The translations under genes were made by a program, and so were the position numbers. DNA of 63,763 nucleotides, the filler included, from Octopus bimaculoides (taxonomy: Eukaryota): NCBI RefSeq assembly GCF_001194135.2. It is 8 parts of 7 records of this genome, joined end to end, with 100 filler letters (N's around TTAATTAATTAA, not from the genome) between each part and the next. Parts side by side here need not be neighbours in the genome. Positions count along the whole stretch, not along the records: positions 62,188 to 63,763 come from NW_026380513.1; 7 more parts are not named here. One strand, 5' to 3'. A model generated the notes under the pieces. It ran no database searches. It was not told the origin of the DNA and saw nothing but the letters and a program-made list of their open reading frames with translations. Positions 62,765 through 63,763 of this stretch are shown piece after piece. Within the stretch, counting starts at the first letter, position 1, and each line of letters opens with the position of its first letter.

Positions 62765-63763
62765 TCATTCTTCAAATACGTTTATTGTTTGGGTAATTTT
62801 ATCTAACACGGTTATTGTTAGCTTAAGATTCGTATTTGTTATAGACAATAACTTAGGTANNNNNNNNNNCAGACGTCAGCAGTATAAAAATAATCTTTGT
62901 GAATGTTGAAAAGTCGAACTCACTTTCATTTAACATATTGTTGCAAACAAAGAAAAAATATACAATTAGAAACAGTTTTACAATGGATTTACAAATCTCG
63001 TTTNNNNNNNNNNGGAAAATGATGGTTAACAATTGTCTTGAACAAACTGGCGTTTATGAATTCTTCCCCATATTTTGACTTAACTAAATTTGGACGAATA
63101 ATTTTGGTTAACTTTATAGATTTAAGCAGAATAAAGTCATACCGTTTCTGAACAGCTTTTATAATTGCAATACCATAAACAAGAAACATGGAANNNNNNN
63201 NNNGCTTTTATAATTGCAATACCATAAACAAGAAACATGGAAACGAACCATATTTCACCAATGGTACCAGGCTTAGCAAATACTGCAACGGCTATTGAAA
63301 CTATATACTCGCAAAAGATTTGAAAACTTGTAAGAAATATATAGATATAATAAATTCCCCAAATTNNNNNNNNNNNNNNNNNNNNNNNNNNNNNNNNNNN
63401 NNNNNNNNNNNNNNNNNNNNNNNNNTTCAAATACAGAGGGAAAATATAAACTTTGAAATAACTTAATGGTAAAGTTAAAATCAGATAAACAACTGGGATT
63501 CCATAATAAACTAGGCACAGAAATACTTCACAGACAGAAAATACTGCAAATAAAATTGTAATGGAAATAAAGAGCCAAAGTGTAATGAATCGCCAGAAAA
63601 TATTTCTTTCGTAGTAATATAACCANNNNNNNNNNNNNNNNNNNNNNNNNNNNNNNNNNNTCAAATACCAGAAATTTGGGTTTAAAGCAGTAGAAATATT
63701 AGCTTCCATTATCGCATAGAGTAGATCATAATCCTGTACTGTAGAAACATTTAAATTGCCATA
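62765..63763 (-). CDS. 3' part of an apparently intronless multi-pass (about 6 TM visible) membrane protein of unknown function; 5' end outside the window
   Basis: The frame is open from the window edge (YGNLNVSTVQDYDLLYAIMEANISTALNPNFWYL..). It continues across five small N-gaps through WLYYYERNIFWRFITLWLFISITILFAVFSVCEVFLCLVYYGIPVVYLILTLPLSYF, IWGIYYIYIFLTSFQIFCEYIVSIAVAVFAKPGTIGEIWFVSMFLVYGIAIIKAVQKRYDF..GEEFINASLFKTIVNHHFP, NEICKSIVKLFLIVYFFFVCNNMLNESEFDFSTFTKIIFILLTS and PKLLSITNTNLKLTITVLDKITQTINVFEE to a TGA at 62765-62767. Each sequenced segment has a stop-free frame. The apparent frameshifts fall exactly at 10-N gaps, one of which (63194-63203) has duplicated flanks. Confidence 0.75.

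Follow-up and report, generated by a model that had tools for sequence, protein, structure and literature searches.

The window analyzed here, a 63,763-nt stretch of Octopus bimaculoides DNA, ends in a piece (positions 62188-63763, from NW_026380513.1) that carries what appears to be the intact 3' part of a single-exon, minus-strand gene of an undescribed lophotrochozoan protein family. We put the probability of this reading at about 0.75. The piece consists of eight short contigs (100-380 nt) separated by runs of N. On the minus strand, one frame runs from the edge at 63763 to a TGA codon at 62765-62767 without interruption, as had been claimed from the DNA alone in an original prediction, and its product ends in ...TQTINVFEE. 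All 275 readable codons, distributed over six coding fragments (Table 1), are free of stops. At 29% G+C, stops make up 7.4% of random codons, and the chance of such a frame at this composition is ~7e-10. In each of these six contigs, which lie above 62765, a single minus-strand frame is free of stops, and all remaining frames of each coding fragment contain 1-9 stops. The product corresponds to the C-terminal ~310 amino acids of a protein of ~740 amino acids; the piece covers the 3' ~42% of the gene, and the N-terminal 58% of this copy lies beyond the edge at 63763.

The readable protein comprises, in order, YGNLNVSTVQDYDLLYAIMEANISTALNPNFWYL, a gap, WLYYYERNIFWRFITLWLFISITILFAVFSVCEVFLCLVYYGIPVVYLILTLPLSYFKVYIFPLYL, a gap, IWGIYYIYIFLTSFQIFCEYIVSIAVAVFAKPGTIGEIWFVSMFLVYGIAIIKAVQKRYDFILLKSIKLTKIIRPNLVKSKYGEEFINASLFKTIVNHHF(P), a gap, NEICKSIVKLFLIVYFFFVCNNMLNESEFDFSTFTKIIFILLTS, a gap, and PKLLSITNTNLKLTITVLDKITQTINVFEE, followed by the stop codon. 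Every sequence feature listed in the original prediction was present: the NVS and NIS sequons, the hydrophobic segments, GEEFINASLFKTIVNHHF (63016-63069), NEICKSIVKLFLI, TS-x-PKLL, and the helical tail. A homology search with the gaps masked as X returned three matches (the O. sinensis protein LOC118765981 at E = 2e-109 and two O. vulgaris models), which did not include the closest relatives. The full-length O. sinensis match, used in turn as the query, returned 22 proteins; they came from Octopus sinensis, O. bimaculoides, O. vulgaris, and Argonauta hians, together with two distant ones. The nearest relatives were P0011 (O. sinensis LOC118765918) and P0012 (O. vulgaris), each 77% identical to the window protein over the 275 readable residues and collinear with it over aa 428-740. 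In fragments 1 and 2, 30 of 34 and 58 of 66 residues, respectively, match P0011. P0011 and P0012 are 82% identical to each other, and O. sinensis/O. bimaculoides orthologue pairs are 89% identical. Because the 77% identity compares with 82% between these two, the window copy is placed as a further member of the P0011/P0012 sub-group, and it may be a paralogue not yet annotated or an orthologue in another octopod. Judged from the relatives, its C-terminus is the true one; the protein ends at the same position as P0010, P0011, P0012, and P0014, and INVFEE is identical in P0014.

We compared the spacing of the assembly gaps with that of the homologues. The contigs on either side of the false gap in fragment 3 overlap and should be merged, and merging the 39-nt overlap gives an unbroken frame (...VSMFLVYGIAIIKAVQKRY...). 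The gaps had been attributed to read conflict between close paralogues or heterozygous alleles; one of the five proved to be this unmerged overlap, and nothing shows conflict. At the site of the 35-N gap, relatives carry exactly 12 residues, IIYTWxxRIKKI, and alignment to the O. sinensis gene keeps the length. The 60-N gap hides the loop following transmembrane helix 5 (TM5) and the first half of a long hydrophobic helix (P0011 543-591). Homologues have two additional residues at each of the 10-N gaps, where the bases left over on either side (2+1 and 1+2) mean that the frame is restored by every true gap length that is a multiple of three. In a blastn comparison, the P0011 gene was collinear with the piece through all gaps, at 76-84% DNA identity, and the alignment continued ~97 nt beyond the stop. 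No gap argues against one continuous open reading frame (ORF), with ~38 codons hidden in the gaps.

The intactness of the window copy was evaluated from its substitutions. Against the P0011 gene, the synonymous rate (dS) was 0.153 and the non-synonymous rate (dN) 0.116 over 274 codons, giving a dN/dS of 0.76. The differences are ~25 synonymous and 70 non-synonymous (rough chi-square p ~0.26). O. sinensis paralogue pairs gave a dN/dS of 0.40-0.52 for the whole gene and 0.45-0.57 for the C-terminal part. Among 65 sites invariant in the 14 other octopod members, three differ in the window copy, all conservatively (F583V, A683V, and M706L). In a leave-one-out analysis, intact Octopus paralogues showed 0-4 changes at invariant sites, a range that includes the three of the window copy. 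Fragment 4 (62870-63003) is 64-68% identical to any paralogue, compared with 81% among the paralogues, and includes a G-to-C change in the conserved EIGKS motif; this divergence may mean that the outer loop has diversified locally or that constraint is locally relaxed. These results indicate that the family is fast evolving and the window copy faster, with changes that avoid the conserved core. An intact, fast-evolving gene is most likely, and we infer that its protein is under diversifying or weak constraint with the conserved core kept.

Two alternatives concern the copy itself. It could be a young pseudogene or a fully relaxed family copy whose readable parts are open by chance. The dN/dS above that of other paralogues and the strong divergence of fragment 4 are in its favor, as are the existence of damaged family loci (in-frame stops in L006, a split frame in L002) and the ~38 codons in gaps and 5' 58% that are unseen. 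However, we consider this explanation improbable: 275 AT-rich codons contain no stop or frameshift, the three changes at octopod-invariant sites are conservative and as numerous as in intact paralogues, and every gap spacing is compatible with the frame. The piece could also be a scaffolding chimera of several paralogues. It is built of eight very short contigs from a multicopy family, two of the joins are unmerged overlaps, identity to P0011 is 88% in fragments 1 and 2 but 64-67% in fragments 4 and 5, and fragment 4 has another best-matching paralogue than the other fragments. Yet the order, orientation, and frame of the fragments are all correct, and the gap sizes are as the homologues predict. 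Fragments 2, 3, and 5 best match the same pair, P0012 and P0011, and fragment 1 is too conserved to discriminate. Fragment 4 is close to no known paralogue, which argues for divergence rather than a swap. A chimera is thus quite unlikely, and a single gene remains the preferred reading.

The gene had been predicted to be intronless and to belong to an expanded family, and both claims held. The complete coding sequences (CDSs) of P0013, P0011, P0010, P0006, and P0019 are each a single exon, in that the gene span equals 3 x (aa + 1): 747 aa correspond to 2244 nt, 740 aa to 2223, 734 aa to 2205, and 782 aa to 2349. The window copy is collinear with these relatives over ~1 kb with no insertion, its 5' part lying beyond the piece. 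Full-length octopod members are ~735 aa long, with a signal peptide, ~200 aa containing conserved cysteines and several sequons, and a polytopic region of ~510 aa. The family counts at least nine loci in O. sinensis and six in O. bimaculoides, and five gene models in O. vulgaris. On the O. sinensis chromosome CM016859.1, four family genes at 205.04, 205.13, 205.34, and 208.47 Mb form a loose cluster (205.0-208.5 Mb), and three further family genes were placed on the same chromosome. In addition, a divergent copy (L004 21070-22002), cut by the end of the locus, is found ~9 kb downstream of the P0010 gene, which is direct evidence of a tandem arrangement; over aa 342-670 this copy is 45% identical to P0011. 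These results indicate that the family has undergone expansion in octopods, in part by tandem duplication.

To examine the breadth of the family, we searched 1.84 billion representatives with a profile built from 11 full-length members. The profile matched 169 representatives at E <= 1e-3 and 87 at E <= 1e-30, mostly proteins of 750-870 aa matched end to end. The named matches, all "uncharacterized" or "hypothetical," came from the abalone Haliotis, the bivalves Mytilus, Ostrea, Ruditapes, Mercenaria, and Mactra, the brachiopod Lingula, and weakly from the annelid Owenia. Relatives in molluscs and cnidarians had been suggested; the molluscan part stood and extends to a brachiopod and, weakly, an annelid, and no cnidarian, arthropod, or vertebrate member was seen among the named matches. 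Full-length family members are ~730-870 aa long and carry a signal peptide and a ~200-aa ectodomain, in which six cysteines are (nearly) invariant and several N-glycosylation sequons occur, ahead of a polytopic membrane domain. The LFxxIxxxHxP and PKL motifs of the original prediction proved to be real family signatures, with consensus GIPxxLFxxxVxxHRPxR and LP (of PKLL) in an alignment of 60 members. In the part of the protein covered by the window, the conserved elements are NPxFW, the TM4 glutamate within CxxExxLCxxYYGxP, the proline of the AKPG turn, GIPxxLFxxxVxxHRPxR, and the LP of PKLL. In P0011 numbering, F458, W459, and P593 are nearly invariant in the 60 members, and the window copy keeps F458, W459, E506, P517, P593, Y608, Y620, I648, P662, and P711; R469 falls in the 35-N gap and is unreadable. 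Comparison of segments of the family profile by hhalign revealed no internal repeat, the sole match being a deliberately overlapping region.

The structure of P0011 was predicted by AlphaFold2 with a 97-sequence alignment; an earlier run with 11 sequences had given an unusable model (pLDDT 49). The final model had a pLDDT of 86.4 and a pTM of 0.83, with 421 residues above 90. It contains an alpha/beta ectodomain (aa 36-228), helices at 230-253, 313-351, 379-395, 482-515, 517-539, 543-591, 593-634, 663-690, and 697-717, a beta-hairpin at 639-649, and a C-terminal helix at 723-739. Hydropathy and this confident model of the closest full-length relative agree on a multi-pass membrane protein, in line with the original prediction. 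The piece begins within the large TM3-TM4 loop, near its end, and extends from TM4 through the last TM, with the second large loop in between, to the C-terminal helix. Charge was counted in the 60 members. The excess of K+R was +5.3 in loop 396-481, +1.8 in the short loop 538-546, and +1.9 in the tail; loop 618-665 carries 11.3 K+R with a net of +2.3, and the turn at 589-597 and the loop at 689-699 are neutral or acidic. Helix 543-591 (49 residues, all hydrophobic) has two hydropathy peaks, so ten spans are conceivable. Nevertheless, the positive-inside counts and the modeled helices favor nine spans, with the N-terminus and ectodomain predicted outside and the C-terminus inside. This pattern would place the loop with NVS and NIS in the cytoplasm. 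Both sequons had been reported as N-glycosylation sites; they are present, but on these charge counts they are probably not glycosylated.

The family was expected to be unassigned, and comparison with known families was consistent with this. Pfam-A gave no match for the window protein or for ~30 individual relatives and no recurrent match in the 60 aligned members; the best single matches (E 0.02-0.1) were each confined to one member. Against PDB sequences, phmmer with P0001 found no match, and hmmsearch with a profile of 97 sequences found only a spurious stretch of lipase (E 0.8). Foldseek, which is weak on all-helical membrane proteins, returned none at E <= 0.001 from the PDB (best E 1.2, TM-score <= 0.12), and there was no match below E = 1 in BFVD. 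A match to a characterized family or a transposon ORF, named beforehand as grounds for refutation, was thus looked for with Pfam, the PDB, and Foldseek, and none was found. G-protein-coupled receptors (class A, other 7TM, and insect-type odorant or gustatory) were rejected: no 7tm_* Pfam or Foldseek match was found, the DRY and NPxxY motifs are absent, as had been stated, and the protein has 9-10 spans and an ectodomain. Cys-loop channels, including the octopus chemotactile receptors, were likewise rejected, with no Neur_chan Pfam in the 60 members and no Foldseek match.

Two O. bimaculoides members, P0013 and P0014, are labeled "Receptor for retinol uptake STRA6" in UniRef, and a STRA6-type receptor/transporter for retinol-binding protein was therefore considered. 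STRA6 has an external N-terminus, ~9 TM helices, and an internal C-terminus (zebrafish structure), and the topology inferred for the family (N-out, ~nine spans, C-in, long helices) is superficially similar. STRA6 is not known to have a signal peptide or a large Cys-rich ectodomain. With the Pfam model PF14752 (RBP_receptor), neither the window protein nor any of ~70 relatives gave a match at E <= 10, while the STRA6 control scored 2e-261. In hhalign, the family profile gave a probability of 0.16% against human STRA6 (sequence validated by PF14752 at 2e-261) and 0.2% against a 14-species STRA6 alignment. Authentic STRA6 orthologues carry PF14752 in the precomputed column, and the octopus proteins carry none. 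No PDB sequence match was obtained, and no STRA6 chain occurs among the best 50 of 78 PDB matches from Foldseek, which is insensitive for helical membrane proteins. A STRA6-type protein is accordingly very unlikely. The label on P0013 and P0014 is unfounded; it is probably an annotation error and could propagate. Finally, although the gene is intronless, multicopy, and, according to the original prediction, from a repeat-rich genome, an ORF of transposon or viral origin or one arising by chance in repeats can practically be discounted, given the absence of transposase, reverse-transcriptase, integrase, and envelope Pfam matches in the window protein and 60 members, the full-length conservation across mollusc classes and a brachiopod, the lack of a viral fold match in BFVD, and the low chance of the open frame. 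Terminal repeats, target-site duplications, and adjacent transposase genes were not seen in 10-kb flanks, where no specific search was made for them.

Several points weigh against the reading of an intact family gene and its membrane architecture. The signal peptide and ectodomain of the window copy are assumed from its relatives. The four real gaps conceal ~38 codons and could be the site of a stop or frameshift, and the dN/dS of 0.76 is not clearly below 1. The choice between nine and ten spans rests on charge counts, and no homologue has a known role. Given the weakness of Foldseek for helical membrane proteins, the lack of a fold relative means merely that none was found.

Table 1. Features of the piece at positions 62188-63763.
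Feature	Positions	Strand	Description
Fragment 1	63661-63763	minus	YGNLNVSTVQDYDLLYAIMEANISTALNPNFWYL; cut by the piece edge; distal TM3-TM4 loop, ~aa 428-461 of P0011
NVS sequon	63743-63751	minus	Fragment 1
NIS sequon	63692-63700	minus	Fragment 1
NPNFW family motif	63668-63682	minus	Fragment 1
35-N gap	63626-63660		In frame as written; 12 codons hidden
Fragment 2	63426-63625	minus	TM4 and TM5, WLYYYERNIFWRF...SVCEVFLCLVYYGIPVVYLILTLPLSYFKVYIFPLYL
Membrane-embedded Glu, nearly invariant	63527-63529	minus	Fragment 2, TM4, within CxxExxLCxxYYGxP
YYGIP turn	63494-63508	minus	Fragment 2
60-N gap	63366-63425		In frame as written; 21 codons implied, 22 residues in homologues
Fragment 3a	63204-63365	minus	Second half of long helix, AKPGT turn (63263-63277), start of next TM (IWGIYYIYIFLTSFQIFCEYIVSIAVAVFAKPGTIGEIWFVSMFLVYGIAIIK)
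False gap	63194-63203		Identical 39-nt flanks, 63155-63193 and 63204-63242
Fragment 3b	63014-63193	minus	End of TM and K/R-rich cytoplasmic loop (beta-hairpin and helix in the model)
Family motif GEEFINASLFKTIVNHHF(P)	63016-63069	minus	Fragment 3b
10-N gap	63004-63013		Out of frame as written; relatives P-LR-N (HHFP-LR-NEI), ~6 nt missing
Fragment 4	62870-63003	minus	Penultimate TM, short acidic outer loop, start of last TM (NEICKSIVKLFLIVYFFFVCNNMLNESEFDFSTFTKIIFILLTS)
10-N gap	62860-62869		Out of frame as written; relatives TS-xI-PK (LTS-xI-PKLL), ~3 nt missing
Fragment 5	62765-62859	minus	End of last TM, C-terminal amphipathic helix (...LTITVLDKITQTINVFEE), stop TGA
PKLL	62846-62857	minus	End of last TM, fragment 5
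3' flank (UTR or intergenic)	62188-62764	minus	First ~97 nt past the stop alignable with the O. sinensis locus
Second false gap	62320-62329		3' flank; 43-nt duplicate flanks, 62277-62319 and 62330-62372

In the 3' flank, a (GATGTT)n/(TGT)n microsatellite is located at 62639-62671, ~100 nt downstream of the stop and immediately past the point where similarity to the O. sinensis flank stops. Neither AATAAA nor ATTAAA occurs on the strand of the gene within 577 nt past the stop. A 3.7-kb Logan contig with a distant family member (L008) has no poly(A) tail. An Rfam scan of the piece gave sub-threshold matches only, both taken as chance: IS128 at 62991-63149 on the minus strand, inside the coding sequence (25.9 bits; gathering score 80), and mir-194 at 62573-62668 on the plus strand (19.2; gathering score 52).

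Irregular gene models were also observed among the relatives. At the O. vulgaris locus L007 3001-5196 (OX597814.1), the 389-aa model P0002 treats 342 in-frame codons as an "intron," and the locus is one intact ORF of 731 codons with every membrane helix. P0003 and P0020 join an N-terminal part to the same point as P0002 (...LAKPD...). The shared junction suggests a recurrent mis-annotation or an exitron. Several of the short annotated "isoforms" belong to loci that actually carry an intact single-exon ORF, and the shorter "isoform" models are no evidence for introns. At L002 9330-11539 (O. sinensis CM016859.1), the 512-aa "isoform" P0001 has no ectodomain; the coding sequence of its ectodomain (aa 1-208) lies directly upstream in another frame, as in a frameshifted gene or an assembly indel. 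In a paralogue sub-group (L006 3001-5811 on O. sinensis CM016863.1; P0017, P0018, and P0022), a tandem repeat of ~20 aa, SPNSxEPNxQQSTNEEVHLE, is expanded in the first cytoplasmic loop. The repeat region of L006 contains in-frame stops or frameshifts, from decay of the copy or assembly errors in the repeat. At the P0021 locus, the expanded 20-aa repeat contains in-frame stops.

What the protein might do can be proposed from its sequence and modeled architecture. The receptor- or channel-like, sensory or immune role suggested in the original prediction is speculative. With a signal peptide that is cleaved off and an ectodomain that is glycosylated and rich in disulfides, the protein would belong to the cell surface or the secretory pathway and have a ligand-facing domain. 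The disulfide-bonded ectodomain would bind an extracellular ligand, and the membrane domain would then pass a signal, a small solute, or a lipid. The two conserved basic cytoplasmic inserts (NPxFW...R and GIPxxLFxxxVxxHRPxR) might serve as an intracellular coupling module. The nearly invariant buried glutamate, (nearly) invariant helix-breaking prolines, very long hydrophobic helix, and two conserved basic inserts would point to a role in moving or sensing something across the bilayer rather than that of an anchor. A plasma-membrane receptor coupled to a transporter or channel is possible on these features, if doubtful. The fast variable sites over a fixed core suggest that the octopod paralogues may differ in ligand specificity. 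By analogy, tandem expansion, a single exon, and fast variable sites would resemble chemosensory, immune, or gamete-recognition receptor families. More speculatively, and in our judgment unlikely, the family could represent a new membrane fold and a lophotrochozoan class of receptor-channels or receptor-transporters, in which the ectodomain would bind environmental, microbial, or gamete ligands and the nine-helix domain with its buried glutamate would conduct ions or move lipid or solute. If so, the octopod tandem expansion and fast outer loops would be signs that ligand specificity has diversified in the service of chemotactile sensing or innate immunity. As a receptor, channel, or transporter, the protein would have a new membrane-protein architecture and would be a candidate for roles in lophotrochozoan sensory, immune, or reproductive biology.

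Lineage-restricted genes of unknown role are numerous in the genomes of octopus and other molluscs, and such orphan families are common. This family stands out in that it is large, conserved in at least two phyla and weakly in a third, and confidently modeled, has no Pfam model, solved relative, or detectable fold match, and has expanded in octopods. Its sequences are already public under the name "uncharacterized protein"; the family is "new" in the sense that it is undescribed and unplaced, although its members have been seen before. Literature searches on STRA6 with octopus, six LOC identifiers, and general terms found no paper on the family.

The octopod members, among them O. sinensis LOC118765918, LOC115211026, LOC115209402, and LOC115232508, O. 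vulgaris P0012, O. bimaculoides LOC106877664/-666 and LOC106875165, and Argonauta hians, are 52-77% identical to the window protein over aa 428-740 and share with it the motifs NPNFW, CExxLCxxYYGIP, AKPG/D, GEEFINxxLFKTIVNxHFPLR, and PKLL; none is identical to it, and all are annotated merely as "uncharacterized protein" predictions. Proteins of bivalves, abalone, Lingula anatina (XP_023932068), and, weakly, Owenia fusiformis (~750-1000 aa) are full-length profile matches at E 1e-20 to 1e-58. They have the same architecture, with the same (nearly) invariant ectodomain cysteines, GGP, F/W, TM4 glutamate, and four prolines, although they are only 15-20% identical to octopod members and often longer at the N-terminus. 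STRA6, the sole characterized name attached to the family by any source, is roughly comparable in size and inferred topology, but no sequence, profile, or fold similarity was found. The octopus chemotactile receptors are nicotinic-receptor-like Cys-loop channels of unrelated architecture. Although the likeness is one of pattern alone and not evidence of function, they and other lineage-expanded, intron-poor surface receptors show the same combination of tandem expansion, simple genes, fast variable sites, and a fixed core.

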